Source of the DNA: Cyanophora paradoxa CCMP329
Lineage: Eukaryota > Plantae > Glaucophyta
DNA: 64,000 bases
Reading direction: 5' to 3'
NCBI GenBank assembly: GCA_004431415.1
Contig: QPMI01000232.1
Span: 42,802-106,801 of the forward strand
Part shown: positions 29,701 to 53,870 of the stretch, piece by piece
Layout: the number at the start of each line of letters is the position of its first letter
How positions within the stretch are numbered: position 1 is the first letter of the stretch
Translations under genes and position numbers: made by a program
Notes under the pieces: model-generated
Databases searched by the model: none
Told to the model about the DNA's origin: nothing
The model's input: only the letters and a program-made list of their open reading frames with translations

Positions 29701-32700
29701 ACCCTCTTCCTCGCCATCCTCGCCGAGTGGGCCGCCTCCGGCCTCCCCAAGCTCGTCCTCCTCGAGGGTCCGCCCCACCCCCGCCCCGAGCGAGGGGGAG
29801 AGGGGGAGAAGGGGGAGGAGGGCAGAAGATTAGAGCACCGCCTCGCGGAGGAGACCGCGCTCCGTGGAGAGATCGCGCGGCTGACGCGGCGCGGGGCCGC
29901 CGGCTGGCTCGCAGACTGCCACCTGTTCGACAGCGGGTCGATGCAGCTGCTCGAGGCCCTCCTCCGCGAGTTCCCCGCCCGCCTCATGGTCCGCTCGCCC
30001 GCCCTGCGCCGCCCCGCCCCGCCCCGGACCCCAGATCCCCTCCGTTCCTTTCTGACCTGGCGCGCGCAGCTGGTGTTGACGACGCGGCCGTCGCGGGACT
30101 TCGGGGCGCGCCTCCTCCGCGCCGCCGCCGCCGCCTTCGCCTCCCCGACCCTCGGTGCCTGCCTGCAGCCGCCGCCCCCTCGCCCCCTCGCCCCGTCGAG
30201 CTCACGCGCGGCGGCCTCGGGCAGACTCGGACCCGAAGGCGAAGGAGCGGGAGAAGGAGCTCGCCGCCAAGGCCGTCGTCGTGCGCCCGAAGAGAATGAA
30301 GAAGAAGAAGAAGATTAAGGGCGGGGCGAGGGGGGCGCCCGCCCGCCTCCCCCTCGCCTGACGCCGATCCCGCGCCCGCCCCCGCCCCCGCTCCCGCAGT
30401 CGATCCGGCTGGGGAACCTGGACCGGGAGGCGGGGGCGCGCCTCGTGGCCGCCACCCTCGGCGTCCCGCCCTCCTCCGTCCGGGTGCGCGCGCGAGCGGC
30501 GCGGAGCGGCTGCGAGAGGGGAGAGCCCCCCTCGCCCCTCTCGCCCGCCTCTGAGCGCCCCCTGCCCGGCGACGGCAGCCGACGGACGAGCTCGCGGCGT
30601 TCGTCTTCGAGCGGACGGGGGGCCACCCCTACTTCATCTCCCAGGCCCGCCGCGCCCCCGCCCCGAGCCCTCCGGCGCGAGCGAGCGCCCGAGCTGAGGG
30701 GCCGGCGGGGCGGCAGGTGACGGGGAGCCTCGTCGAGCGGGGCGCCGTCGCCGTCGAAGGGAGCGAGGTCCGCCGCCCTGGGGCCTCCGGCCCTCCGGCG
30801 CGCCCCTCTCGGCCTCGGCGGCCCTCGCTCACGCTCCGGGGCAGGTGCTGCTGCTGGGCGACCTGCGGGCCGTGGGCCTCCCCGACAACGTCCACTCCGT
30901 CATCCGATCGCGCGCCCCGCCCCCGCCCCCGCCCCGGCCCCGGCCCCGCCCTGTTACCCTCTCCTGAGCGCCGCGCCGCGTCGCGTCGCGCAGGCGCATC
31001 GACCGCCTCACGACGGTCCAGCAGATGGTCCTCAAGGTAAGAGGGCAGGGAGGGCGGAGGGGGCGTCCCAGAGGCCGCAGGCGGGCGGGGCGACCGGGCC
31101 CCGCGCGCAGGTGTGCTCGGTGGCGGGGACGGACGTGACCTTCCGCATGCTGGAGCGCCTCCTCCCCGCCAGCACCCGCCTCGAGGGCGCCTCCGGAGAG
31201 GCCCTCCTCCTCGTCCGCCCCGCCCCGCCCCGCCCTCCTTTCTCTCGATCGAAGATTAGAAGACGACGACGATTAGAAGCTAGAGGAAGCCCTTCGGCTC
31301 GGCGCGCCCGCTGACGCTCCGGGGCGCGGCCGCAGGCGCTGGACGAGCTGGTGGATCTGGGCCTGCTGGCGACCATCGCCCTCGGGGGGGGCGCCGCCGC
31401 CGCGGGCGCCTCGCACAGCCACAGCGATGCCGCGCAGCCCGGCACGCGCTCCCACGCCTCGCAGGCCCCAGCGCCAGCGCCGCCGCCCCCAGCAGGTCAG
31501 TGGGCTGAGCATTGGGCTCCTGACGCGCCTGACGCGCGGGGCCGGCCGGCAGCGCCTCGCACTCGCACCACCACGTGAGCGCCCGCAACAGCGCCGCGAG
31601 CGTCGCGGCCGCGCGCGACCCCAGCGGCGTCTACGCCTCGGGCGGGGGCGCCTCGGGGGCCGGGGGGGAGGGGGCGCCCTCGGGGCGCTCGCGGCCGCCC
31701 ATCGCGAGCCGCTCCGTCCGCTTCGGGACCGTCAAGGCCCGCAAGGTCGGTCCTCGCGAAAGACAGGGAAAATGTCCTCTCGCCGGCCCCTGATCCCCCG
31801 GGGCCCGCCCGCCAGGCGACGCGCACGCTCCTCGCGACCAAGAGCCGCATCGCCTCCATGTGCGCCCGGCCGGCCCGGCCCCCCGCCCCGCCCCTCGCCC
31901 CCCCTCGCCGGGGCCGACGGGGCGGGGCGGGGCGGCAGGCCGGACGTGCTCTTTGCGGGGGCGGACGTCGGGCAGCGCGTCTACACCTTCGCCTCCGCCA
32001 CCGTCCAGGAGGTCCGCGGGGGGCGGGGGGCCAGGGGCGAGGGGCGAGGGCGGGGGAGGGGGGCGGGCCCTAGCACGGGGAAAAGGGCGAGACAAGGGAG
32101 CGCCGCGGGTCCTGAAGACTGGAGATGATGATGATGAAGGGGGGAATTCCCCGCCCGCACACCGGGGCGATGCGGGCCGCGGGGACGGGGACGGGGGGCC
32201 CGCGCCGCGCTCTCCCCCTTGAGCCCTCTGACGCGCCCCCCCCCTTAGGTGACGTACGCGGGGATGTCGCTGGAGCTGCGCACCCGCCTCCACCGCAGCG
32301 TCGGCTTCTACCTCGAGGAGGTGCGGGGCCCCCACCCCCGCTCCCCCGGCCTTGCTCTGCTTTGCTGGGGAGGGGGGCCTGAGGCGAGGCCCCGCAGGAG
32401 AACGCGCGGCTGGCGAGCCTCCAGCGGGGGGCCCCGCGGGGCTCGGCGGGGGGCCACGGGGCCCACCACGGGGGCCACCACCGCTCGGGGGCGGCCTCAT
32501 CGGGGGCCCCGACGCGCTCGAACTCGCTGGCGGTACCCGCGCCCTCCTCCATCGCCGAGGGCGGCTCGCCCTACCACCGCCAGGAGCGCGCCGAGGGCGC
32601 CAGCGGGGCGAGCGGGCGGGGCGTCGGGGCGGCGGCGGTGGGGGCGGCGACGACGGACGCGGCGTTGGGGAACCACTTCGCGCGGGGGGGCGTGCCGGGG

Positions 32701-35463
32701 CGGGCCCTCCTCTACTACCTGCGGGCCCTGCAGGCGGCCCTGCGCGAGGGCCTCCTCGCCGAGGCGGTGGCCCTCGGCGAGGCCGCCTCCGAGATCGTGC
32801 ACGGCCTGCCCCAGTTTGCCCACCTCCGCCGCCGCGGCTCCCACTCTTCCTCCTCCTCCTCCTCGGCCGGCGGCAGCATCGCCGGCGGCGGCGAGGCGCA
32901 GGGCCCCGGGAAGGAGGGCGGGAGGCCGTCCTTCTGGGCGCGGCTCTGCGGCGGCGGGTCGCGGGCAGCGGCGGGGGCGGGCGGAGCGGGCGGGGCGGCG
33001 CCCCTCGCAACGGCGCGCAGCGTGGCGGGCGGCGGCGGCGGCGGCGGGGCGGAGAGCGACGCGGCGTCGGCGCTGGGGCGGACGCACTCGCTGGCGACGG
33101 CGCCCTCGGGGCGCACGGAGGCCGGCGAGCGGGCGGCGGCGCAGGCGCGCACGGCGCCGGGCCCCGCGCAGCTGCGCGTCGCGGCCGCCGACGCCCTGCG
33201 GTGCCTGGGCGAGGCGTACCGGGACCGGGCGAGTACGGCCGCGCCGCCGCCGCCTACCGCCGCTCCGTCTCCGTCCTGGGCGTCGTCCTCCCGGCCCGCG
33301 GCCTCGCCCTCTCGCTCGCCCTCCGCCGCGGCCTCCTCGCCGAGTCCTGGCGCCTCTGGCGCACCGGCTCGCTGGCGCGGGCCTCCCAACCGGCCCTGCC
33401 GCCCCCGTCCCTCAACGTGCCCACCCCGGAGCCGCGCCCCGGCCACCCGGGCTCGTCGGCCTACTTCCGGCCCCCCGCGGAGCAGGCCGTGTCGGCCGCC
33501 GCCGACGAGACCCCGGCCCGCAGCGGCGTCCTCTCGTTCACGGTCAGCTTTGCCAGAAGATTCGCGGCGCCGCGGGGGCGCCTGACCGGGCGGGGGCCTC
33601 GCGCGCAGGCCGAGTCGGAGGCGACGGTGCCCTCGCTGCCGGCCATCGTGACGAACCCGTCGCTGCTCGCGCTGGGCGGGCCCCCGCCCTCGCACGCCCG
33701 CGTCGGCTCCCGCGACCCCTCCATCGTCGGCGTCGTCGCCGCGCGCAGCTCCTCCGCCGGCGCCGCGCCGCCGCCGGTGCCGGTGCCGCAGCCGCCGGGC
33801 CCGGCGCTGGGGGAGGGGACGGTGGCGGTGCTGGCGCTGCTGGGCCTCTCCGAGGTCGCCCTGCTCCTCTCCGACGTGCCCCTCGCCAACCTCGCCGCCC
33901 TCGCCGCCGTCAACGCCCACCTCGCCGCGCCGCCCGCCGCCCCCGCCGCCCCTCCCGCCCCGGCCCCCGCCTCGGGGCCGGCCCCCGGGAGGCGCACGTG
34001 GACCTGCCGCTGGCGATGGCGTACGGGGCCGGCGTCTGCGCGCGCCTCGGGCGCTTCCGCCGCAGCGAGGAGCACGCCGCCTTCGTCGAGCGGCGCCTGG
34101 ACGAGGGCGCCGCCGCGCGCCCCGCCCGCTGCGCCCTCGCCCTCGCCGCCTCGTACCACGTCCGGGGCCTCCTCGCGCGCGCCGCCGCCGCCGCCGAGCG
34201 CGGGCGGGGGAGCTCGAGGGGGGCGAGGAGGGCGACGCGACGCTCGTCGTTGGCCTCGAGACGTACGGCGCCGTGGCGACCGTGACGGGCCTCCTCGAGC
34301 CCAACTGCCTCGAGGCGACCCTCGGGTCCTTCGCCGAGGCGCTCGCCGGCCTCCGCGCGCGGCACGGCGAGACGGCGGCCCCGAGTACCTCTCCCTCCCG
34401 ACCCGCGTCGCCCTGCTGCTGCTGCGGGGCGCGGCGGAGGAGGCCGGCGCGCTGCTGGACGCGGCGATCGCGCACTACCCGTCGGTGCGGCGCCTCTTCA
34501 GGGTCCCCGAGCCGCGGCACCGGCGGCCCTCGCTGGGGACGGCCTCGGGTGGCCGGCGGGGGCGCCCTCGCGGCGGCAGTCGCTGGACGGGGCGCGCCGG
34601 CGACGCACCGGCGGCGGGGCTCGGCGGCGGACGCGGAGCTGCCGCTGCCGCCGGCGACGAGCCGGCGCCTCTCGACCCGCAGGCGAACTTCCACGGCGAG
34701 GACTCGCACGCCTCCGACGCCGTCATCCAGGTCCCCTCTTTCTCCTTCTCCTCCCCTTTATTTTCTGAGGGCGGGGCGGGGCAGATGCTGGCCGGCCCGG
34801 CGGCGCGGGCGAGTCTGGAGGCGGGGGACGCCGAGCGCGCCCTCGAGCTCGTCGAGGAGGGGCTCCGCCTCCTCGAGACCCGGGTTCGAGCCCCGCCGGG
34901 GCCCTTTCTTATCATTGGCGCGGCCTGACGGGCGCCTCGCAGGAGTCGCTGCCGGACTACGCGCTCTTTCACGTACGTGACCTGGCGCACGCGGCCCTGG
35001 CCCTCGCCGAGGCCGGCGACTCCGGCTCGCTGCGCCGGCCCGTCCCGGGCCCCGACCTCGTCCGCCGCGCCCTCGCCGCCCTCGAGAAGGCGGCCCGCGC
35101 GGTGGCCCACGGCCCCGCCGCCCTCGCCCTTTTCCAGGGGCGGGCCCTGCTCTGGCGGGGCCGCCGGGGGCGGCGGCGCGGGCGTGGCGGGGCGGCCTCC
35201 GCGCCGCCGAGCGCCACGGCTGCGCGATGGACGCGGCAATGCTCCGCGTCTGCCTCGCCTCGCTCGAGCCGCGCGGCGGCCCGCGGCGCGAGCCGCCCCT
35301 CGCCGCCGCCTGCGCCGCCCTCGAGCGGGTCGGGCTCGTCGCCCCGGCGGCGTGGGCGCGGCGCGTGCAGGCCGGCGCCCCGGCCTTCGGCGCGCCCGAG
35401 GGCCTCGCCGGCGCCGCCAGCGAGGGGCCCGACTCCCGCTCCGTCGACGGCCCCGCCCCCTGA
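23702..35463 (+). CDS. ADCY10: Soluble adenylyl cyclase (ADCY10/sAC)-like protein: two class III cyclase domains + STAND P-loop NTPase + TPR-like region
   Basis: C1: ALLF|SDVSGF...HLNAYLGKQIDIILEHGGDLVSFHGDAIL. C2: YDGFIRQVTFEDK|G...AAFGVPP...TTGFAFMSVVGNEQRSDFSILGDV|VNSCARLM...LKG. NTPase: VVGRDREL, VVVEGQAG|VGKT, DCHLFDSGS, RTGGHPYFI, LPDNVHSVIRS|RIDRL, RTRLHRSVG. Confidence 0.9.
26399..26457. repeat. (CCCCG)n pentanucleotide repeat in an intron
   Basis: About 11 tandem CCCCG units. Shorter runs at ~19374-19403 and ~48170-48210. Confidence 0.9.
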
Positions 35464-36084
35464 GCCCCCCGCCCCGCCGCCTCCCTTTCATTCAGAGTGC
35501 CTCGGGCCAGAATAGGGCTCTCTTAACGCCGATTTCTCCCTTTTCGAGTGTCCCGAGTTCGAATTTAGGGCGAGCGCTGCCTGGCGCCCTCTGCTTCGGG
35601 GCGCCAGCCGCTGAGCCGCTCTGCCGTAGTATTTGCAGAGCATGCCTTTCTTCTGCGTCGTATAAAATATGCGTGGCCTGCGTTCGCGGCCCGCTTAGTG
35701 GACTCGTCGTCCAGATTATTTTCGCCGCTTGCTTAGTTGACTCGGTTGTCCAGGTTATTATTTCAAGCATCCTTTAGTCGATTCCAGATTATTTGGGGTT
35801 TTGAAACTATCAGACTCTTGAAATCATTGACTCTGATATAACTAAAGCTGCAGCTGCCCCCAATCACCGCGGCACGTCGAGGCCCCGAGCTCGAGGCGCA
35901 TATTGCGCGCTGAACTTGTACGTCTGCGCAGTTGCCGAGCTCGCCGAGACCATCGCGAGCCTGCGCACGCATGCACATACACATGGGTCCGGATCAAATG
36001 GATCCTATCGATATCCGGATCCCAAGAATCTTTTAATTTTTTTGCGCATCCATCTCCGCGTCCGGCCCACTTCCTAGTATACGT

Positions 36085-36145
36085 GTATGGCTGCCACGGC
36101 AGCCTTGCTTACAGCAAGCTAAGCACAACATGTCTTGTCATGAAG
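36085..36145 (-). repeat. Split direct repeat B2 (3' terminus of element)
   Basis: Identical to 39903-39963 (GTATGGCTGCCACGG...GTCATGAAG). Confidence 0.95.
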
Positions 36146-36553
36146 TGAAGGTCTAGATTCGCGCTTGCCAAAGCCGCGAAGCTAAGATCATGACTCGCTC
36201 GCTCACAAGAAGGGCAAGCTGCAACTGCGCTCGAGGACATCAGCTAGCGCACGCTGCAGAGTGAGTCTTGCGGACGTAGAATGATTGAACATTAGTGATC
36301 AATTGTTGATCAATTATTCATCAAAAGATATCAATGGTTGGCACTAACAATGGCTTAAAGATGACTGAAGGCATAGTAAACAATGGGCATTGCTAACACA
36401 CATTGAAAGCGGCTAAGCAAAGCCGCTCGAGCGGCTAGGGAACAAGCCGCTCAGCAAGTTACACAGCTTGCCCTCGCTTGTGAGCGAGGGAGACAAGCGC
36501 CGACAGCACAGCAAAGGCGCACAACTGCGAAGCAAGACTCTAAGACTAGACAA

Positions 36554-37553
36554 TCAACTACTGCGCCGAGTACGCGCGACTTGCTGCCGACATGACTGCA
36601 GCGAAGCTGACGGGCCAGCGTAACGAGCACCAGGCCTAGCCATGAGCGCAGCCAAGGGCGGGCGCTCAGCAGAATCGATATAGCGTCGGTAGACCGCTGA
36701 CAACAAAGACCAGCGACCAACCGCTTGAACAAGCTCTTCAGGCACGCCCGCAGCAGCCAGAGCAGTAGCTCCACCGCGACGCAAGCCATGAGGTGTGATA
36801 CCAGTGGCGTCCAAGCCCGCCGCGTCAAATGCGAACCGGAGAACATAGGCCACGGTCTGAGCTGACAGAGAACGAGCTGCGTCCGAAGCTGCCCAAAAAG
36901 AGGTGCGCCCGGATCCGCGAGCGCTAGAGTCCGCAAGTAGGTTCGAAACCAGAACACCGGACAGATGACCGACTCTGGGACGGCGCCCAAGACAACTTGC
37001 GCGCCTTGGCGACGACGATCGGTCTTGGAACCGGCAATGAAGAGCACGACGCGATCCGCGCGGATGGACACATCTTGCCGCCGGAGTGCCACGATTTCGC
37101 CACGCCGCAACAGGCCAAAGAAACCGGTAAGCAACATCACAAGGGCGCGAAGGAGCTTGTTTGAGGGGAACGAGCGTAGGTACGAGCAATCGCCTCCAGG
37201 TGGACGGACGTGACCAATGCAGATTGCTTTGCTGGTTTTCCACAAAGTCGGGCGATTCCTTGCAATGTTTGCAGCACAAGGGGGTGAGCAAATGCAGTAG
37301 TAGGCAACATCCTCTGCCTTGTCTGATGTAGCAGAGCAGAGTGACACTGGTCAATTGCTGAGAGACCGTACTCTTCATCAGCAAGAGCCACCAGCAGTGT
37401 TGCGACGCCAGAAGCTGTTGGTGGCCAGGCTGGAATGCAGTGAACCGCGCAATGGCCTTCATAGAGGACGACCCAGCGGGCGTAGAGGCTTTGGGTTCGC
37501 TCGCTCACAGAGTTTGTTCTGTAGAAAGTGACCCGGTTGAGCAGATCAGCCAT
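36554..37553 (-). pseudogene. Tyrosine recombinase of the retrotransposon, two frameshifts
   Basis: Three frames in succession: N-terminal part (MADLL...HPLVLQTLQGIAR), then GFFGLLRRGEIVAL...SKTD...CPV, then TPHGLRRGGAT...VGRW...YRRYI. The R-K-HxxR-W-Y catalytic set is present. Frameshifts near ~37170 and ~36885. Confidence 0.9.
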
Positions 37554-37708
37554 ACGAGCACCTGCATCACCAGAGTCAAGGGTATGTCAGACTACATTTC
37601 TTCTTCTTCTTTTTAAAGCCCCCACTCAAGCTTTCTATCCCTGTTGCTGGACAAAGTAAGCTGAGCAGAGATGAGCAGGAGTTGAATTCTGCAGCAAGAG
37701 CCTTCAAT

Positions 37709-39673
37709 CTACTCCCACGACACATAAAGAGCAACAAGAATCCAGGAAGGTAACTGTGCCGAGCGAGGCCCGCGATAGCACACGTCATATGCTGGGCCAA
37801 GCACCATTGCAGGTGCACGCAAGGCAAGCTGCAACTGTGGCCACCATGGAGCTGAGGGCCACTGAGGGACAATAAAAACTGCCGAGGCCCTACACTGGCG
37901 GACATGTGACACAAGGTGCAAGAGGACATTTGGGTCCGGAAAGACGTAATTACGAGCACCACGCCAGGTTGCTGTAAAGCAATCATATCCTTCAGCATGT
38001 CGATCATTCAAATCAATGGAAAAGTATCGATTTAGGTGAGTGTTGGCTGATGAGGCCATACGATCAATATCAAAAGGTCCAAATGTCCGACTGACCATGG
38101 CAAAATACCCAGGTTTCAAAGAGTAGTCGGCGGGGTAAAAGTAGCGACTCAAAGCATCGGACCACTCATTGTCAACACCAGGAATGTGTTCTGCTTCAAT
38201 GCTGATGCAATTGAGCAGAGCAATATCCCAAATTGCTGCTGCAACTCGGCAAAGGTATTCATGTCTTCCGCCACCATTGTTGATGTAGGCCACAGTCACT
38301 GTGTTGTTCGAGCGAACTAAGATGTTCTGATTGCGCAATAAACCTTGATAGTGCTGCATAGCGCGAAGCACTGCCATTAACTCGCGCCACGACGAAATTT
38401 GCTGAGCTTCTTCTTGGTTCCACAGGCACTGGAATGGGGCAGGCTCAAGCTCCCAAGCCACAGGTTGAGCATCACCAATTCGGGTAGTGATCCAGGCTCC
38501 TGCACCAACATGGCTTGCATCCGTAGTCAACACAAAGAGCCTTTCAGGCCGAATAGGGCAGCGGCCATTGTATCGGTGGATGTTGGCCAGCCACCACTCA
38601 AGTTCCCGACGAGTCTCATTGGTGAGCTCCACTGGATGATTCCAATGCCATTCTCTTGCCACGACATTGATGTATCGAAAGAGGGACCTGGTCTTGATGC
38701 GAGCTGGAGCCAAGCCCCGTGCCATGGACACAAGGGTGCCGGCGACCTTGGCCATTTCACGTGCAGATGCTGATTTCTTTTTCTTCAGAAGCCCTTTGAT
38801 CAAAGCAAGCAGACGACCAAGCTTGTCTTGGGGTACTTCAAACAACATGCGGGCGGAGTCCACTATGAAGCCCAAGAAAGCCACCGACTGTGCTGGGGTG
38901 AGCTCAGATTTGCTGTTGACCACAAGCTTGAGGGCAGCAAATGTTTTGAGGACGAAATCCCGCAATTCACAGGCCTTCTCGTAGGTTGGAGCAGCAAACC
39001 ACCAGTCGTCAACATAGTTCACCACGAAGATGCCAAAGCGGCGGAAGTAGTTGACCACTTGTCGCATGATCTTGACGAATGCAAACGGTGAGTGCTTGAG
39101 GCCGAAGGGCAAAACTGTGTACACATAGAATTTGCTGTCAAACTCAAAGCCCATGTTCCGCCAGTCTTGCGGTGAGACTGGCACGTGGTGGTATCCAGAT
39201 TCAAGGTCAATAGTGAACATGTACCAGCCTTGGCGCAGCATGGCTGCAACATGCTCAAGAGTCTCATACTTGAAGGGGATGTCCGGAAGGCCTTTATTGG
39301 TAGGCCGGCCATCCCAGATGAGCCGCAACTTGGATCCAGTCTTCTTGGGCACCACGGACAGTGAGCAGACAATGTTCACTTGAGCTTCTTCAACTTCTCT
39401 GATCGCTCCCGTGCGCAAAAGCTTCTGAATTTCGGTTCTCACAAAGTCCTGATGGTCCACAGCCGCAGACTTGTGGTTGGCCCGGCGCTCTGCTGGCAGC
39501 CGCCTCGCTCCTGACAAAGGGAAACCACGCAAGATCCAGTTGAGCACGACATCATTGGCTCCAATCGCTCTCCACTGTTGGACTGCAGCTTGAATGCAGG
39601 ATGCAACAAAGCCTCCTGCAAAGTGAGGTGAGGCCTTGCATTGGCAGACATGCCCAATTATCGCGGTGCCCAT
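37709..39673 (-). CDS. pol: Pol: reverse transcriptase + RNase H + DIRS-type adenine methyltransferase-like domain
   Basis: 654-aa open ORF. RT: KLRLIWDGR, FTIDLESGYHHV, LPFGL, YVDD. RNase H: TTDAS, RELMAV, RSNN, HIPGVDNEWSDALSR. MT: DIDRMASSAN...W...YVFP...VPQWPSAPWWP. Confidence 0.95.
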   Translation of the reverse strand: MGTAIIGHVCQCKASPHFAGGFVASCIQAAVQQWRAIGANDVVLNWILRGFPLSGARRLPAERRANHKSAAVDHQDFVRTEIQKLLRTGAIREVEEAQVNIVCSLSVVPKKTGSKLRLIWDGRPTNKGLPDIPFKYETLEHVAAMLRQGWYMFTIDLESGYHHVPVSPQDWRNMGFEFDSKFYVYTVLPFGLKHSPFAFVKIMRQVVNYFRRFGIFVVNYVDDWWFAAPTYEKACELRDFVLKTFAALKLVVNSKSELTPAQSVAFLGFIVDSARMLFEVPQDKLGRLLALIKGLLKKKKSASAREMAKVAGTLVSMARGLAPARIKTRSLFRYINVVAREWHWNHPVELTNETRRELEWWLANIHRYNGRCPIRPERLFVLTTDASHVGAGAWITTRIGDAQPVAWELEPAPFQCLWNQEEAQQISSWRELMAVLRAMQHYQGLLRNQNILVRSNNTVTVAYINNGGGRHEYLCRVAAAIWDIALLNCISIEAEHIPGVDNEWSDALSRYFYPADYSLKPGYFAMVSRTFGPFDIDRMASSANTHLNRYFSIDLNDRHAEGYDCFTATWRGARNYVFPDPNVLLHLVSHVRQCRASAVFIVPQWPSAPWWPQLQLALRAPAMVLGPAYDVCYRGPRSAQLPSWILVALYVSWE

Positions 39674-39741
39674 CTAGCACTGCTACAGCTGATGGTCCAT
39701 GCAGCCGCTGGCTTGAAGATGGTGACACGCGAACGGGAAGA

Positions 39742-39963
39742 AGCTTAGAGGCCTTGGCTGCGAAGCAAGACTGAGGCTTGTACCCCAGGGGCGCACTTAT
39801 AACTTGTAAGTGCGCCCCTTGTACATATGTGCGTAAGCAAGGCTGCCTTTATTTGGCAGCCATACACTGCCCTATGCTACGCTGACGCTCACATAGGTTC
39901 GAGTATGGCTGCCACGGCAGCCTTGCTTACAGCAAGCTAAGCACAACATGTCTTGTCATGAAG
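39742..39963 (-). repeat. Internal B1-A2 repeat junction between gag and pol
   Basis: A copy 39742-39902 abuts B copy 39903-39963, reproducing the junction that joining the two element ends would make. Confidence 0.95.
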
Positions 39964-40601
39964 AATATAAGAGTGAGCGTGTCAATGTGCTTGTTGGTTC
40001 AAGTCTTGAGCTCACATGCACACACAGTGCCACAATGCACCCACAGTGCCACAACACATTTGCACAGGCATGGACTTTCTGGATGAATGCGCCAACCTGC
40101 GATATCAGCGGGAACAGTTGGCATCATGGAATCTTCGTACCCTTGTGTACTCCTCACCTGCAAAATGCACTAGGTTAATTTCAGAGCGCCCAGTATGCGA
40201 TAGCGACACACGGGAAGGCCGGAGGGGGCCAGGAGCTCGACAGCCAGCAGCACTCCTGACCTGTGCTGGAAACAGGTCAGTTGCCGGGAGTCAGCTGGGG
40301 CTCTGCCAGGTTGGAGTCATCCAGACGGCAATATATGCCACTAGCATTGAAAAGAAAAGTAGACTACAATCACAGTCACACTTCACAGTGTTAACACATG
40401 CAAATGCACACAGGACCAATGCATAAAGCCACAGCATGCCGGCGCCACCACGGCTGGTAATGACTATGCCGCACCCGGCCACAATGCCGCACCCGGCCAC
40501 ATGTACACCATCACATGAAATGGAAGCATAATACATGTATTGCATGTTTAGGGAAGCATACACGCACACTCTAGATCTTCTGAAGACTGCACTTGCATAT
40601 G

Positions 40602-41782
40602 CTAGCAATACTTATGCTTGCAAGAACACACCGAAACACTAGTATCTAGCGAAATGCGAAACGAAAACTGCGCGTCCACACAAGGGCGCGCACGTCTACT
40701 TGGGGGGTCGCGCCAGCCGGGGCGCGGCTCGTTCGGGCAATCCTTCACGACATGCCCGGGCTTGTTGCAGCGGAAACACATCCCGCTGTTGCGCTGCGAC
40801 GGCGGGCGATCGCGGCCCTGGTGCTGGGGCCGCGGGTTGGCGTGCTGCACATACGGGCGCCCGCCGGCGGCCTCCGGGCCAGCAATGTTGAGCGCGTGCG
40901 CCAGCGCCGCAGCCGTGCCCCGATACTCCTCTGGCACACCTGCCAGCCGCTCGGCAAGCTTGTCGCCGCCCTTGTCGCGAATGTCGATCCGCTTCCGGAG
41001 CTCGTCGAGGATTTTGAGGCTCTGCTTTACGTGATCGTAGCACGCAGTGCACGAAGAGCATCTCTTGAGCTGAAACTTAAGCTGCGATAGCTGCAGGGCA
41101 AGCTCACGAAGCCACGGGTTTTTGAGCTGCATAGCCTCATGGTTGTCTTTCTGCTGCTCGCCGAGCTGCTGCTGCTGCTGCTCTTGAAGCTTGATGACCG
41201 CGCTATCTATCCCACGCTGAAGTAGCTCAGCCCACGCTGGCGGAAGCGCACCCGCTGCCGGTTTGGTCGACGTTGGGGCAGTCGAGTTGCCAGCGGGTAC
41301 AGCATAAGGGCCTTGAAGGTGACGGGTGAAGCCGGTTGACGGGCCAGCCGCGCCCGGATCCACTTGCGCCAAGTTCGGAAAGTTGCGCGCAGCCACTTGC
41401 TCTTCCTCGTCGTAGGCGCCACCGAACTGCTCACGCTGTGCCAGTCTAACGGCAACGTCGTCCTCAGGTTCATCTTCTGGGTCGGACTGCTGCTGGTCCG
41501 GATCCGGCGACACGGCTTTCTCCTTGCCTTTGCGAGATCGCGTCGGCGGAGGTGCAGGCTGCTCCTCCTCCGCACTGTCGTTGGCCGGAGCTTGAAGACG
41601 AGATGACGACCTCCGGGCCTGGGCGCGGGGGTCGTCGCCGTCTTGGGTTTGGCCGACTTGCGCGCACCAGTGGCCGTTGACTTGCGTTTCTGCGCCGCCT
41701 CGGCACAGGCGACGAGCAGAATGATGGTCAAGACGACTACGAACAGAGGGGCCCACGATGGGCTCCTCCGCGAGCGAGCCAT
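40602..41782 (-). CDS. gag: Gag-like ORF1 with CCHC zinc knuckle (probable 5' frameshift)
   Basis: CFRCNKPGHVVKDC knuckle near the C-terminus of the 384-aa ORF 40602-41756. An overlapping frame from ATG 41782 may supply the true N-terminus. Confidence 0.85.
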
Positions 41783-41788
41783 GACCTC

Positions 41789-41949
41789 AGCTTAGAGGCC
41801 TTGGCTGCGAAGCAAGACTGAGGCTTGTACCCCAGGGGCGCACTTATAACTTGTAAGTGCGCCCCTTGTACATATGTGCGTAAGCAAGGCTGCCTTTATT
41901 TGGCAGCCATACACTGCCCTATGCTACACTGACGCTCACATAGGTTCGA
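41789..41949 (-). repeat. Split direct repeat A1 (5' terminus of element)
   Basis: Matches 39742-39902 with one substitution seen (GCTACACTG vs GCTACGCTG). Confidence 0.95.
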
Positions 41950-46046: not shown

Positions 46047-46396
46047 CGAACTCGGCGCAGCTGCAGTCAGCAGCCTGTCGATTCCTGCCGCGCGTACGTG
46101 AGCTCTGGTCCTCTGGGGCGCCGCATCGATTCCAGCGATTCTTCGCACCATAGCCTTCGACATTGCGCGAGGAGATCCGAGGTAGCAGCGGCGAATCCCG
46201 TACCCGGCAGGAAAACAAATTCGTCGGCTACGTCTGCCAGCGGATGCGGGCCTTCGAGGCCAGCGGCGCGCCGTTGCTGCTAGCACACTCCGCCGTAGCG
46301 GCGCCGATCCGCCCGCGGCTTCCCAGACGAACGCTGGCCGCCAGCGCTCTCCCGAGCCCAGCGCGGCGGCGATCGCACGCGCGAAGGGCGCGGATC

Positions 46397-48407
46397 ATGG
46401 CGAGCAGGCGGCCGCTTCTGGTCGCCTCCATCGAAGAGGGCGAGCGCGGCCCGCTCATCGATGCTGCGCATGTGGCGCGGCTCACGCTCACGGGAGCGCG
46501 CGCCGCAGAGGGGGTGCTGCTTGAGGAGGAAGAGGCGGATATCGCGAGCGGATCGGGCAGCGGCCAGGCGCACGGTTGGCGGTGCGCGCTGCGCTTGAGC
46601 TGCGCCTGCTGCCACCTTAAGATGGGCCCTGCCGGCTCCCGGGTGCGCGCAGGGAAGTCGCCGTCAGCGCCATCAGGTGCGCAGCGCGGCGGGCGCGCCC
46701 TCTCGGCGCCTGGCTCACCGGGCCGCCGCCCGCAGCGGCGCCGCGGCTGGCTTCACGGTCGACGTGCGCCCCGCGGCGGCCCGGCCCGGGGCGGAGCGAA
46801 CGCTGGCCTGACGGCTCTCGGGGCGCGCGCGCAGCTGGTGATGTACCCGATCGACACGGTGAAGACGCGGCTGCAGGCGCGGGACGTGCGCGGGCTCGTC
46901 AACCTGCGCGGCCTCTACCGCGGCGTCGGGCCCGCCCTCCTCGCCGTCCGCCCCCGCCCCTCTCCTCGCCTCCGGCCTCTGACCCCATGCTTCGGGCCGC
47001 CGTACGAGTGCAGGCCGCCCCGGCCGGCGCGAGCTTCTTCAGTGCGCGCCGCAGCGCCCGGCCCGGCCCGCGCGCGCCGCCGCCGCCTGAGCTCGCTACC
47101 CCTCACAGCGGCGTACGACGGGACGAAGGCGGCGCTGGCGGGATCGGTGCCGCCGGCCGCCGGGCAGGTCGTGGCCGCCGCCGTCGCCACCGTCTTCGCT
47201 GCCGGCCTCCGGTGCCCCGCGCCCGCCCGCCCCCCCGCCCGCGCGCGCCTCGGGCCTCCGCGCGCTGCTTACCGGCGCCCCCACAGGACGCCGTTCGAGC
47301 TGGTGAAGCAGAACATGCAAACGGGAGCCTACAGCACCGGCCTCGAGGCCGCCGGCGCCATCTACAGGTGGGGTACAGCGTCTTCGGAAGGGCCTGCAGC
47401 TCCTCCCACGCCCCCACGTGACGCGGCCGTCCGTGCAGGAGTCGCGGCCTCCGCGGGCTCTTCGCGGGCTACGGGTCGCTCATCGCCCGCGAGATTCCGT
47501 GTGCGCGTACCCCGGCAGTAGCCCGCCCGGGGTACCCCTTTTTGACCCCGACGGCCCCGCAGTCGACTGCATCCAGTTTCCGATGTGCGCCGAGGCTCTC
47601 CCCCACGTCCTTGCCGGACTGCCAAACGCCGTACCCCCGGCTCACCCGCGCGCAGGTACGAACAGATCAAGGACGTCGCGGGCCGCGCGGCGGGGGGCCG
47701 CCCTCTCCACCCCCATGAGATCGTCTTCGTCGGTACGATGCATTCCTGTACCCCCGGCTGCTCCTGTACCCCCAGCTCACCCCAGCCGGGGGTACAGGGA
47801 TGACGGCCGGCGCCATCTCCGCTGGCCTCACGAATCCCCTCGGTGTGCCCGGGGCCCGCCCTGCCCCGTACCTCCGGCGAGCCGCTCTTACCGGCGTACC
47901 CCGCGCCGCAGACGTCGTGTGAGCGCCGTTCTCTCCTCCGGTAGCCCGGCGGTTCCGGAAACCTTCTGCCCCGCAGGAAGACCCGGATCATGACGCAGGG
48001 CGAGGGCGCCCGGCGCTACGCCGGTACCCCCCTCGCCCGCCCCCCTCCGCCTCCTGCCCCGGGCGGGCCGCCAACCCTGAGGCAGGGGTGGCGGACGCGT
48101 GCCGGAGCATCCTGAGGGAGGAGGGCCCGAGGGCCTTCCTCCGCGGCGTCCTGCCCCGCATGACCAGTCCGCCCCGCCCCGCCCCGCACCGCCCCGCACC
48201 GCCCCGCCCTGACTCGCCCTGAATCGCCCTTGCGCAGTGATCGGGCTCGGCGGCTCGGTCTTCTTCACCGCATGTGCGCCGGCTCCGCCCCTCTTCCCCG
48301 CCCCGCTGAGGCGGCCCCGCTGCGCAGTCGAGACGACGAAGCGGGCGGTGGAGCCGCGCCTGCTGGGGGCGGGCCCTGGCCCCGGCCCGCGGCCCGCGGG
48401 ACCCTGA
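46397..48407 (+). CDS. SLC25A26: Mitochondrial carrier family protein, S-adenosylmethionine carrier-like
   Basis: Three Px[DE]xx[KR] repeats: YPIDTVKTRLQ, TPFELVKQNMQ, NPL|DVV|KTRIM. SAMC-type motifs GLYRGVG, GYGSLIAREIP|FDCIQFP, GVLPR and GLGGSVFF. Confidence 0.9.
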
Positions 48408-48477
48408 TACCCCGCAATCGCCCGGCGCCGCCGCGAGGGGCAAGATCGAGAGCTCGCCAAACCAGCACGACAAGGAC

Positions 48478-48530
48478 CCTACTACTCTACTACTCTACTA
48501 CTCTCTACTGTCTAGTACTAGTACTAGTAC
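48478..48530. repeat. (CTACTACT)n / (CTAGTA)n microsatellite between convergent stops
   Basis: ctactactctactactctactactct...ctagtactagtactagtac. Confidence 0.75.
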
Positions 48531-51500
48531 TGAAGATTGAGCCTCCATTGTGCGATGGCGGCGGCGAGGGACTGGTTGGGAGTCAGCACGGGCCCGGGCA
48601 GCGGCTGCCCCAAGGTCAATGTTGGCGACCGTCGAATATTAATGGACTCCGGGAGGGCGGCGCACGATGCGGCGGCGCGTGATGGGCGAGGTTTGGTTGT
48701 CGTTGAGCCAGCGCTGCAGGGCCCTCCGCTCGTAGCTCATGCCCGTCCCGTCGTTGAGAGTCACCGGGTCTGCGCGCGCGCGCGCCACGTGCTCGCTTCA
48801 GCAGATGCGAGAGCACGGCGCGGTGCACCTGCGCCTGCGCGCATGCGCACCCTCCATCACTTCGTGCAAGATGGGGCAAAGGAAGTCGGGCGGTGGTTGC
48901 GATCGCGAAGAGTCCCGCGGCAGCTGCCCGCGGGGGGCGCTGGCGCCGGGGGCAGGCGAGGCGGGAGCCGGCGCCGCGGGGAAGGCCGGGGCAGGCCACT
49001 CCGAAGGCTCGGGCTCGGGGTCCCATTCGAACTGCGAGGGCGCGGCCCACCAGGACGCTGCAGCTGTGCCGTGCATGTACCCGTGCTTACATTAGAAACA
49101 CGACGGCGCATATCAAACTATGCCACAAAATCACTGACCGCGCCCACGGGCGCCGCCGCGGCCCCGCCCGCGGCCCCGCCCGCCAGAGCCCCAGCCGGCT
49201 TGCGCCGGTGCCGGCCGAATGATGTGCCAACCCTGACTCCGCGCCTCGTGCTGCGGCCGAGTCGGACCGGACCGGAGTGCGGGATGGACTGTCGGGGCGG
49301 GGGGGGGGGGGGGGGGGGAACCTGGAGGCGGATGCGGTCCTCGGGGGAGCACGTTTCGTGCGAAAAGCGGCAATCGGCGGCTCTCCGATGGCACCAGTTG
49401 GGGTGGCCCTCCGGGAGCCCGAAGAAGCGGCGACAGGGAAGCGACTTCAGATCTGAATTTGGGTGCGTCGGCGTTCAAAACGGGGGAGGGAAAGCAGGGA
49501 GGGGGGGAGAGGGGGGGGGGGGGAGGCGGACCGTGGATGAAGGGGCACGAGGAGCCGACGGGACAGTTCCCCCCCCTCGACATGAAGGGGCAGACGCGCG
49601 CGACGGAGGCGCTGTGGCGCGATTGCACTCAGCGCGGAGTAAATGAGATTTGGAAGAAAAGGGGGGCGGGGGGGGAAGAGGGGTAGCGGTGGCCGCGAGA
49701 GGGGGGGGGGGAGGGCGGGGAGGGGGGGGCGTAGGGGAAGGGGGGGAAGGGGGGGGGTAGCGGGGGCACCTGGACTGCTGCCCGATGATGTCGGCGCGGC
49801 TTTCCACCGCGAGGCTGCCGACGGGGGCGGCGCGCCCGTCGGGCCCGGGGGCCGGCCGCGGGGCCGGCGGCACGTAGGCGGGGTCCAGCGTGTACGGGCA
49901 CGGCACGGGCGCGATCTCGTCCTGCGCGTCGTCAACAAGGGCCGGCGAGCTCGAGGGCGGGCGACGAAGGCACTCGCCTGGACGATGAAGTCGGAGGCGG
50001 CGCGGAGGGCCGCGTGCGCGATCCTGTACACGTTCTTGTCGATCCGGAAGCACTTGTCCTGCCCCCCCGCCCGCCCGGCCCGGCCCGTCAGCCCGCCTCG
50101 CGTCGGCGCCGGGCGGGCCGCGGGCCGGGCCCGGACCTTGTCGGCGGTGTAGTTCTCGAGGAGGTACACGGAGGCGCGGGGGATGCGCAGCGCCTCGCTG
50201 ACCTGCCGCCGACCCCGGCTGCAGTGAGCGCGAGGCCGTGGGGCAGGGCCGCGGCGAGCGAGCGCGGGGCGGGCGCGCCTTGCGGACGAGGTCGTCGCGG
50301 ACGGCGTCCCCCTCGAAGCGGTCCATGTACGAGATCGCCACGACCGCCTTGCGCCCTGCCGCCCCAGCGGCCGGCGGCGCCCGGTGAGCGAGCGGGGCCG
50401 GCTGCAGGGCGGCGCTCGGCTGCGCGCGCACGGAGCTCGATGGTGGCCTTGCGGTAGAGGGCGGCGAAGCGCTCGAGGTCCTCCCCCGCCACGTACTCCC
50501 CGCTCACGATGAACACCACCGAGTGCACCTGTACACGCGATGAACAGGATGATTGTGGGGCTGTGCACATAGTAGGCTGGAGGGCCGGCGGGGCGGGGCG
50601 GACCTTGCGGGCGGGGCTGTAGTAGATGACGGGGCTGCCCGTCTTCTCTCGCACCAGGTTCTCCGTCACCGTCGCGTTCATGTCGAACTGGCGGTGCCCG
50701 CGCGCCCCGCGGCGTGAGGGGCCCCGGCGCCGGCGCGCGAGGAGCGCCGAGGGGCGCACGAGGAGGGGGAGGGCGCCGTGGAGGATGAGCTTCATCTCGT
50801 CGCCCCCGTAGTTGTCGTCGTCGACGCCCCACGAGTCGAACACGGCGAACTTCAGCTGTGAGAGCTCCGAGATGCTGCGACCGCGGCGAGTCAGCTGCAG
50901 CCGCACGCCCGAGCCGGCCGCGCGCCCGCCTGTCGAGCTGGAACTGGAAGAAGTTGGCGGTGACGTGATCCGCCGTGCCGCCCACCACGCTCGGCGCCAC
51001 CACCTGCACGGAAATTCAGCAAGGGAGTCGAAGTCGACGTCGACGCGCTGACCTGGCTGCACAGGCTCGTGCAGACCGAGTTGAAGAAGCTGGAGCCCTG
51101 TCAGCGCGGGCCGGCCGGGGGCGGGGTACGGGGGCGCGCACGAGCTCTTGCCGTTTCCCATGGGCCCGAAGAAGAGGACGTTGGCGCGGGGGACGTGGGC
51201 CGAGGGCGGCGCCCAGTCGAAGATGTCCCCCGTGAAGTCCTCTGCGGCCCACGCGTACGATTGTCCCCGGCCCCTCGCCTGCATGCAACTTGAAGTGCGC
51301 ACGGAACTCGAGGAAGACGGCGTCGTCCTGCGTCGGGATCCCCACGTTCGCGTCGCTCACCAGCGCGAACTCGACGATCTGCGGGAGATGCGCGGCCGGG
51401 GCGCGGCCGGGGTCAGCGGCCTCTCGGAACGAGAAGGAATCAGGGGCAGACCTCGGGGAGGAGATCGAGGTACTCGTGCAGGGCAGCGTGCGAGCCGCGC

Positions 51501-53408
51501 CCCTTCGACTGGAGGCTGCCCCTGCGCGCGCCGTCGTTTGCACGCGTACGGGTACGCAATGGCGCGGAACAGCGCGCACTTGCTGATTGCCGCCTCGCCG
51601 GTGGCCAGCGCTCGCGTCACGGGTACGATGAGGGATCCGAAGTAGGCGTTCTCCTTGAAAACGACCTGCGGGGGTACGTGAATTCAGGCAAGGGGGTACG
51701 GGGTACGTGAAAAGTTCGCCTTTGAGTTCGCAGGGATCGTCTGCACGCCGAGATTCTCGACCTAAGGGGGCACAGCCTCTTCAAAATTTGCATACCGCGA
51801 GTTTGCCGGGAGGGAGCGGGGTGAGTCACCGCACCTTGACCTCAAGGTGCAGGTCTTGTCCGATCCGAACCTGGGGCCGCCCCGTGAAGGTGCGGCCAAC
51901 TACGAAGCCATTAGCGAGGCACGGAGGCGATTTGGGGGGAGAAGAGGGGGGGGGGGGAGGGGAGAGGGGAAGGGGGGGCGGGAGGAGGGGGGGGGGAGGA
52001 TGCCTGTTACGCGCGCGTATCGTTCGGGCAGCGCCCCGCCCACCGCGCCCGCATCGTCCGACGCCTCAGGAAAGGCAGCGGCGAGCGCCTCATCGAGGCC
52101 CTCCATCGCGTATACGCGCCCGATCTGCACGAGCCCATGATCAGGGCGGAGTCGCGAGGGGCGGGTCCGCCGGTTCCCCGGCCAGCGCACCGAGGCGATC
52201 GGCTCCACGCCCCCAGTTGAGTTCTTCGAACCGCAGACGACGCCGAAGATAGCGGCCTTGTACTGCGGGCCCGCGCGTGAGTCGAGTGGATAGGAACGAA
52301 ACGCGGTGCGAATTCATTCGAGCGCGCGCGCCTCCGTCTTGAGCGCCCGCGCGGCCGCCTGCTGCCCCTCGCTCGGAAAGACGCCAGCGGTGATGACCCA
52401 CACCTGCGGGCAGCGTCTCAGAGTCTCGGAATGCGAGGCGATCGCGATCGGTCTCCGAGGTCTTCGAGGGGGAGGCGGGACGATCGCGCCTGGCGCTTGC
52501 GGGGCGAGGCCTTGGAGACGAAGACCTCGGCGGCGACCTTCTGAAGGGCGCCGGCGACGCGGGCGCCGCCGGGGGCCGCCACAACGCCTGCCACGGCGGC
52601 GTCAGGTAAAAAGTGTGCAGGGAATAAATAGGGAATAAATTCGCAGGATCACGCTAAAACTGTGGGGGAGTAGACCTATCCTAGAATTTGAATGGCGTCC
52701 CTCGATCTCGGTGCGCGGGGACCGGGGAAGAAGGGGCGCGGGGTCTCGGACCGGGGATTGCATCGCGGGCAGCGTCGGCGCCGGACGAGAGGGGCGCCAG
52801 GATCTGGGGTGCGATCACGATCAGACCCGGAGGTCGACGGGGGGGCGCTCCTGAGCTGAGGTGCTGAGCGTGGCTGAGCCAAGCGGACCTCGGGGTGGTC
52901 GGCGAAGCGGAGGAGGGCGGCGCGGGCGGCGGGCCCCGCGGGGAGGCGGTCCAGCACCTCCAGCGCCACCTGATCATGAGTCGCAGAATCGAGCGGATGA
53001 GAGCTAGCGCGAGCGGCCGCCGGACGGGGGCGCGGTCGCGATCGCGGGGGATGCGTGAGAGGACAGGCCTGGCGCGCGGCGGAGAGGGCGGAGGCCTGCA
53101 TGTGCTCCGACACGTCCACGAGCTGCGGCGTCGTCGGGTGTCAGGGCGGCGCTTAATCGAGGGGTCATCTCACAAAGCGCAAGCTGCATGATCATGAACG
53201 TTAAGATTACCAGAACGACGTCGAGGCCGGCGCCCGACGACGAGGACGCGGCGGGCGCGGGCGAAGGGCGGCCGCGGAAGGCCTTCGTGTAGTTCTGGGT
53301 GCGCTGGAAGGTCGCCGTCCCGGGATGCGGCGCGGGCGCGGTCGAAGCCGCGGCGGCCGCGGGCTCCGCGCCGGAGCTCAAGCTGCAGCTGGCGGCTGGC
53401 TTTGACAT
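48524..53408 (-). CDS. vWA - IFI44-like P-loop GTPase - CCCH finger - U-box multidomain protein
   Basis: vWA: LDVVL|LVDVSEHM...RAALLRFAD...GGARVAGALQK...VWVITAG. GTPase: NVLFFGPMGNGKSS|FFNSV, AVFDSWG, ILHGALP|QF, VHSVVFIV, ISYMD, LLENY, ALRAASDF. CCCH: CPFMSRGGNCPVGSSCPFIH. U-box: PPDFLCPILHEVME|DPV...SYERRALQRWL...TSPIT...LTPNQSLAAAIAQW. Confidence 0.85.
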
Positions 53409-53870
53409 TGCCGACACGGAAGAAGGCGCGCTCCTGGCGGACAGGCGAAGGAAAAAGGCCCCTGGAAGAGGCGGGTAGGAGGCCTAGGCCAGAATATCTG
53501 CGGGATATTCGAGTAAAATTTCGACCGAAATTTGGCGATAGGTCAGTACTCATGCAGGGTTGCTGTTAGTCGCAGTTACTCCAGACCGCATCGGTTGCAG
53601 TTACAGCAGTTACAGCTGATCGGTTGCAGTCGCAGCGCTGGCGCGAGCTCGTCCGTAATCGCCAGCAGCTTGCAGATCCAGACGAGATCAGCCTTACAGT
53701 CGAGATCTAGATCATTAGGTGATCATGAGGCAACGACCTGCGCGCTGTCGGCAGATCTAGACATCGATAGACCAAGCGGCCATTTGCATGCGGATGGCCA
53801 TGCATATGCATATGGCCGGCCCGCGTGTCGTGCACGCGCGCGCTCGCCGATTCTGACCGTCGGGCGCGCT

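Follow-up and report, generated by a model that had tools for sequence, protein, structure and literature searches.

Few human genes respond to interferon as strongly as IFI44 and IFI44L, and the molecular mechanism of their products is unclear. U-box ligases often act as dimers, and cytosolic vWA domains occur together with ubiquitin machinery in plant WAV3-type RING-vWA ligases, Rpn10, and TFIIH p44. The Mx GTPases, which predate animals according to one report (PMC11789081), are a precedent for a deep eukaryotic origin of interferon-induced GTPases. The subject here is a gene in a 64,000-nucleotide (nt) stretch of the genome of the glaucophyte alga Cyanophora paradoxa CCMP329 (assembly GCA_004431415.1, contig QPMI01000232.1, positions 42,802 to 106,801), called the window below. 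A first-pass annotation, made from the sequence alone, had proposed that it encodes an IFI44-like GTPase fused to a vWA domain, a CCCH finger, and a U-box, an architecture not known to it from the literature. A literature search likewise found no description of vWA/IFI44-like/U-box proteins, and no paper on IFI44-like GTPases outside animals.

Positions 48524-53408 of the window, minus strand, are one expressed gene. Its 896-amino-acid (aa) product has the domain order vWA, beta-sandwich, P-loop GTPase, CCCH finger(s), RGG patch, and U-box, and the GTPase is homologous, at the family level, to animal IFI44/IFI44L. The features are as follows:

48524-53408, minus: whole coding region, 29 exons, 896 aa (spliced contigs, canonical introns, open frame, EukProt match)
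51898-53228, minus: vWA domain, aa ~61-250, from the end of exon 1 to the first base of exon 9
51310-52016, minus: beta-sandwich middle domain, aa ~246-360 (all-beta segment 190-305 of the structure model)
49978-51236, minus: IFI44-like septin-type GTPase, aa 365-606, exons 14-22
49533-49592, minus: CCCH zinc finger 1, C-x8-C-x5-C-x3-H, aa 664-683, exon 24
49358-49435, minus: possible second CCCH-like motif, C-x13-C-x6-C-x3-H, aa 690-715, exon 25
49139-49190, minus: RG/RGG-rich patch, aa ~748-765, end of exon 26 (from translation)
49064-49138, minus: intron 26, 75 nt, GT-AG, phase 1, lying between the RGG exon and those of the U-box
48542-48893, minus: U-box, aa 822-891 of the model, exons 27-29

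A single spliced gene

The spliced translation begins with an ATG at 53408-53406 and ends with a stop codon whose last base is 48524, exactly the limits of the first-pass annotation, and its reading frame is uninterrupted through 29 exons. The 28 introns measure 49-164 nt, and each has GT-AG or GC-AG ends. The region is ~70% G+C, and lists of open reading frames (ORFs) carry little information there by themselves. Splicing was followed in Logan contigs of four public runs, aligned to window 48300-53700 (5,401 letters): X1, X5, and X7, which are RNA-type and come from three studies, and X17, a DNA run from 2012. Contigs of all three RNA runs carry the minus-strand spliced form, with 15 joints listed and 16 further; every listed one is GT-AG or GC-AG after the permitted shift, and the DNA run has none of them. 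One RNA contig of 2,447 nt (X7 record 16) connects 53497 with 49074, and transcript contigs together extend from 53497, in the 5' untranslated region (UTR), to ~48323, in the 3' UTR. Such contigs are unsuitable for ranking expression level. A pseudogene or annotation artefact was considered and rejected, given the intact frame, canonical splice sites, and RNA support.

Some exons took more work to place. A masked junction near 49253/49329 is a 71-nt GT-AG intron (49251-49321), and the middle exon of the U-box is 48666-48769 (104 nt). A single-intron solution for 52005-51720 failed; a GC-AG intron at 51900-52003 resolved this region, with exons then placed at 51835-51899 and 51720-51761. For exons 2-7 there are 99,676 formally valid chains when donors are restricted. 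The chain was picked for a summed length of exactly 429 nt, as demanded by X7 record 16, and a vWA-like frame; it is preferred on the basis of that sum, a frame coherent with vWA relatives, and identity to the EukProt protein.

This protein, P0001 (tig00001000_g6184.t1, 894 aa), was retrieved by a word search with a stop-free ORF of the window, and is an independent model of the same C. paradoxa gene. It differs from the 896-aa model only by two alanines where exons 26 and 27 meet. At the beginning of exon 27 (window 49057-49065, minus) there are two AG acceptors 6 nt apart: the upstream one (49063) fits the X1 and X5 RNA contigs, while EukProt uses the downstream one and drops the two alanines. 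The upstream acceptor is favored, since the X1 and X5 contig matches end at 49063; there may be tandem-acceptor alternative splicing at this exon. Homology searches described below used window sequences or P0001 and its parts, not the joined 896-aa model. The sequence elements listed in the first-pass annotation are all where it placed them, by spliced translation, Pfam matches, and splice sites.

As a separate observation on the DNA run, a 7,998-nt X17 contig matches the window over only 88 nt (49975-50062), with five differences including G>A at 50008 and C>G at 50011 and 50023, and an odd joint from 51124 to 50584 is also found in X17. Both probably reflect a paralogous copy elsewhere in the genome.

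The GTPase and its kinship to IFI44

The first-pass annotation had recognized an IFI44-like GTPase over ~230 aa at ~49980-51200. By BLASTP the domain aligns to a fish IFI44-like protein over 234 collinear aa (26% identity, E 2e-21), with every previously named motif in register. In the spliced translation, the P-loop (GPMGNGKSS + FFNSV) is at 51167-51089, interrupted by an intron at 51090-51141; DSWG is at 50837-50826, the G4-like SYMD is at 50332-50321, and ILHGALP, VHSVVFIV, LLENY, and RAASDF are further motifs. P0001 retains G1 (GxxxxGKS), the switch-I Thr, DxxG, and the [ST]xxD aspartate; in a 95-sequence alignment (A2), the columns G29, K35, T64, D87, G90, and D184, which are invariant or at least 90% conserved, are all present in it. 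With the conserved G1-G4 residues in place, binding of guanine nucleotides is plausible.

A phmmer search with aa 360-612 against 1.84e9 representative proteins found 388 homologues. Among these are proteins from loach (P0122) and clam (P0123), which combine TLDc and GTPase domains and are named “interferon-induced protein 44-like” at NCBI (library-wide E ~2e-10), and a further TLDc + GTPase protein (P0137; library-wide E 1.4e-9). An AlphaFold2 model built from the 95-sequence alignment scored well (predicted local distance difference test (pLDDT) 93.3, predicted template modeling score (pTM) 0.91), and matched “Interferon-induced protein 44(-like)” clusters of the ESM-Atlas with a template modeling (TM) score of 0.86 over 247-250 of its 253 residues. 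By both sequence and structure, then, the best named match is IFI44, and not another GTPase family, the outcome that the first-pass annotation had said would refute its reading.

Comparison with solved structures is less specific. With Foldseek, the best GTPases in the PDB are generic ones (EF-Tu and others; TM ~0.45), and families are not discriminated. A family profile places septins first (E 3e-8), followed by IRG, Toc34, and GIMAP4. The longest VIA-align alignments are to Toc33 (204 aa, Z 14.8), mitofusin, and septins (192-196 aa, Z 12.6-14.1); EngB has Z 15.2. A search of the PDB with the single GTPase sequence gave no matches. A word-indexed protein search with the GTPase domain also gave none, which reflects the sensitivity of the tool rather than an absence of relatives; the same search with profile A1 was similarly limited, and matched only the protein itself, the paralogue P0002, and generic vWA proteins. 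Pfam finds nothing significant in aa 245-612 of P0001, with only sub-threshold P-loop matches in the GTPase region.

The IFI44 label stands at the level of the GTPase family and no further. Pfam finds no TLDc/TLD domain in P0001; P0122, P0123, and P0137 do have one. In a quick IQ-TREE analysis of the G domain (98 rows), the TLDc proteins form one clade (SH-aLRT support 100) with P0001 outside it; P0001 joins P0002 (99) and then P0003-P0005 (97), and the surrounding set of 37 rows, with weak support (76), includes 19 of the 20 vWA-linked ones. The Cyanophora protein is therefore not an IFI44 orthologue, by both its lack of TLDc and its position in the tree.

N-terminal modules

The vWA domain, with a degenerate metal ion-dependent adhesion site (MIDAS; DVSEH, ITAG), had been proposed at ~52010-53230, and Pfam and alignments to relatives agree. 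On P0001, Pfam VWA (PF00092) matches aa 63-215 (E 1.3e-14, 55.2 bits vs. a cut-off of 23.8), and VWA_2 also matches (E 6e-12). In an AlphaFold2 model of the N-terminus (pLDDT 88.4), an all-beta domain comes after the vWA fold. With VIA, the vWA part aligns to the vWA domain of CMG2 over 168 residues (Z 23.5, root-mean-square deviation 2.1); CMG2/TEM8 and complement C2a match at Z 22-23.5, and the vWA domains of TFIIH and Rpn10 are also among the fold matches.

An intact MIDAS (DxSxS...T...D) was not found in P0001: all three positions checked in alignments A1 and A4 are substituted, with DVSEH, GGA, and ITAG where relatives have DxSxS (DGSGS), GGT, and ITDG. All three are substituted in P0002 as well, P0003-P0005 are further eroded, and relatives outside Cyanophora keep the site. 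With three positions lost, metal-mediated ligand binding becomes a weaker idea and a sensor role for this domain doubtful. Of the “self-contained sensor” put forward in the first-pass annotation, the vWA domain itself is present; its part as the sensor is what comes into question. The beta-sandwich is conserved, by alignment, in most relatives, immediately preceding the GTPase; in one of them (P0006), the region has a weak match to CARDB (E 7.6e-4).

The C-terminus and the exon 26/27 junction

The CCCH finger, RG-rich patch, and complete U-box foreseen downstream of the GTPase were all found, with Pfam support for the first and last. On P0001, zf-CCCH (PF00642) matches aa 662-684 at 21.7-24.4 bits (cut-off 20.5), and U-box (PF04564) matches aa 820-889 with E 2.4e-14 (53.7 bits, where 21.4 is the cut-off; the match covers positions 2-68 of the 73 in the profile). 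The second CCCH-like motif has no Pfam match in P0001. On raw ORF pieces, Pfam matched the CCCH finger and the U-box and nothing else.

Whether the U-box belongs to the same protein depends on intron 26. The predicted joining intron is a canonical 75-nt GT-AG intron, with donor GTCAGT at 49138-49133 and acceptor CACAG ending at 49064. Two RNA contigs, record 1 of X1 and record 12 of X5, join the three U-box exons (48851-49063, 48666-48769, and 48524-48604) to each other. These contigs leave the genome match at 49063 with exactly 30 extra letters, and the upstream contigs of the same runs start at 49139; this is the k-1 overlap expected at a branch of the assembly graph, and indicates splicing. 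The U-box exons have no in-frame Met ahead of the U-box, and are therefore unable to give a separate protein. If intron 26 is retained, translation stops at a TGA (49133-49131), giving a ~767-aa product without the U-box. The first-pass annotation had noted that transcripts ending at this TGA would make the U-box a separate gene; one RNA contig does retain the intron, while the X1 and X5 overhangs fit splicing, and spliced and intron-retaining isoforms probably both exist. For a transcript shared by GTPase and U-box, the contigs speak only indirectly, through the 30-letter overhang and their matching ends; the EukProt model and homologues agree with the fusion.

Relatives and recurrence of the architecture

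The vWA/beta-sandwich/GTPase core is found collinearly in Gonapodya sp. (a fungus), Phalansterium and Physarum (Amoebozoa), and Pharyngomonas (Heterolobosea), the last three as transcriptome-derived proteins, and in many metagenomic proteins. It spans four eukaryotic supergroups. In Gonapodya sp. JEL0774, vWA, GTPase, and U-box are in one polypeptide (P0021, KAJ3341444.1); GTPase and U-box are also combined in the paralogue P0004 and in the shorter P0093. The fusion thus recurs in other proteins and is not a local annotation accident, but neither is it unique to Cyanophora.

The domain partners vary. Among the 115 best hits, VWA is the most frequent (17), ahead of double zinc ribbons (6), U-box and EF-hands (3 each), and TLDc (2); Ig-headed IFI44-like proteins are found in fish (ESM-Atlas rows), and P0141 has a discoidin head. 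Cyanophora itself has at least four paralogues, with U-box or LOTUS tails. Three of these (P0003, P0004, and P0005; g12366, g12367, and g12369 of EukProt set EP00741) are near-adjacent on contig tig00020629, and have near-identical GTPase domains but differing long tails: U-box, LOTUS/OST-HTH (in P0005), and WH_Egal-like. They look like a recently duplicated, diversifying cluster.

Possible functions

The combination of an intact GTPase of a dimerizing class, RNA-binding-type modules, and a U-box favors a nucleotide-gated, RNA-associated E3 ubiquitin ligase. The gene structure, splicing, domain identities, and GTPase homology are shown above; that this one expressed gene gives a cytosolic 896-aa protein working in such a way is probable, if well short of certain. 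In such a protein, the CCCH/RGG segment could anchor it on RNA or ribonucleoprotein, and the vWA + beta-sandwich module could bind either the GTPase itself or a partner protein. With its G1-G4 set intact, the GTPase would self-associate on binding GTP, much like septin, Toc, and GIMAP-type GTPases, and the U-boxes thereby brought together would recruit a charged E2 enzyme. A complex prediction for the homodimer with GTP scored 0.00, and is evidence neither way.

Several points weigh against this scheme. CCCH finger 1 barely exceeds its Pfam cut-off and the second is non-canonical; the degenerate MIDAS may make classical ligand binding by the vWA domain doubtful; among the contigs listed, none spans 49063/49139 with at least 31 letters on each side, and X7 record 16 is unspliced through intron 26 to 49074. 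How animal IFI44 works is itself not settled, and reports describe its GTP-binding motif as dispensable for some activities.

The cell-autonomous defense role proposed in the first-pass annotation is an analogy. A possible role in defense or conflict would fit the family pattern: interferon-induced kin, heads and tails that are shuffled, and an expanded set of paralogues could all be read this way. The broadest version would have IFI44-like proteins as ancient, eukaryote-wide modular immune or conflict sensors with swappable heads (vWA, TLDc, Ig, discoidin, EF-hand) and tails (U-box, LOTUS, zinc ribbons), of which the Cyanophora gene would be a single-chain, RNA-triggered, GTP-gated antiviral ubiquitin ligase. 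This is offered tentatively, as possible but doubtful. If it is true, the effector step carried within the protein could reveal the effector logic of animal IFI44/IFI44L.

The main alternative has no defense role: a housekeeping post-transcriptional E3 guided by CCCH/RGG to mRNA- or ribosome-bound proteins, like Makorin, Roquin, or CNOT4, with the GTPase as a regulatory part. CCCH, RGG, and E3 domains commonly go together in the turnover and quality control of mRNA, RNA runs of ordinary cultures from three studies show the gene to be expressed, and the LOTUS and WH_Egal domains of the paralogues are RNA-granule type modules. Patchy distribution, tandem paralogue expansion, and head and tail swapping are however more typical of conflict genes, and the nearest named relatives are interferon-induced; a purely housekeeping role seems somewhat unlikely.

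Retention of intron 49064-49138 in most transcripts would make the main product the ~767-aa vWA-GTPase-CCCH-RGG protein, with the ligase a minor or regulated isoform. X7 record 16 is unspliced from 49139 down to 49074, and the X1 and X5 assembly graphs break exactly at 49139 and 49063, as expected if both forms are present. However, the k-1 overhang with which the U-box contigs of these two runs depart the genome indicates splicing; the junction is canonical, in-frame, and phase 1, and EukProt joins the same exons; P0021, P0004, and P0093 have the U-box in the same polypeptide; and the U-box exons are without a start codon. A mainly U-box-less product is improbable. A degenerate adaptor or decoy paralogue that senses nothing and modulates MIDAS-competent relatives or other partners would account for a MIDAS substituted in P0001 and P0002, worse in P0003-P0005, and kept outside Cyanophora, but is very improbable, as the loss is common to the whole Cyanophora clade, no MIDAS-competent partner is evident in the genome, and the GTPase motifs and U-box are intact.

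The IFI44-like GTPases as a family are much older, and more modular, than one would judge from those of animals. The GTPase domain of IFI44 has clear relatives in amoebozoans, in a heterolobosean, in an early-diverging fungus, and in the glaucophyte. In these organisms, the GTPase is usually preceded by vWA and beta-sandwich domains, and in several lineages is fused to ubiquitin ligase or RNA-binding domains; these fusions yield testable hypotheses on what an IFI44-like GTPase couples to. The Cyanophora protein is a tractable single-chain model for biochemistry, and a family currently labeled “hypothetical protein” gains a name.

Other features of the window

A convergent neighbor gene (~46163-47521, plus strand) has a mitochondrial-carrier repeat (Pfam Mito_carr, E 4.8e-8). 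Base composition varies along the window: the 12 kb at 24001-36000 are 74-81% G+C, compared to 55-73% elsewhere, and positions 36085-41949 have a low G+C of 52-58%, unrelated to the IFI44-like gene.

Comparison with known systems

At the level of ligase logic, WAV3-type ligases, Rpn10, and TFIIH p44 have a different domain order and no GTPase, with no sign of a specific relationship. Makorin, Roquin, and the antiviral ZAP-TRIM25 pair share with the Cyanophora protein the pairing of a CCCH RNA reader with an E3 ligase, a functional comparison in which homology is not claimed; they differ in that they use RING domains, or the ligase is a protein of its own, and they have no GTPase or vWA domain.

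At the level of the GTPase fold, the solved structures that come nearest in a profile search are those of septins (E 3e-8), Toc34, GIMAP (AIG1), and IRG proteins, which also give the longest structural alignments, but identity is ~10-15%, and Z-scores do not separate them from other TRAFAC GTPases (EngB 15.2). These nearest solved families are dimerizing GTPases, and nucleotide-dependent self-association may accordingly be expected of the Cyanophora domain as well.

The closest in overall plan are the unannotated proteins of Gonapodya (P0021), Phalansterium, Physarum, and Pharyngomonas, with the same collinear vWA/beta-sandwich/GTPase core and, in P0021, a terminal U-box. Unlike the Cyanophora protein, they have an intact MIDAS and no CCCH/RGG segment, and their GTPase identity to it is 22-30%.

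Animal IFI44 and IFI44L differ in their TLDc N-terminus, in place of vWA and beta-sandwich, and are without the long CCCH, RGG, and U-box extension at the C-terminus; Cyanophora, for its part, has no interferon system. What the two have in common is the GTPase, homologous along its whole length of ~250 aa, with the same GPxGxGKSSFFNS P-loop, DxxG, [ST]xxD G4, and C-terminal NY...helix region.

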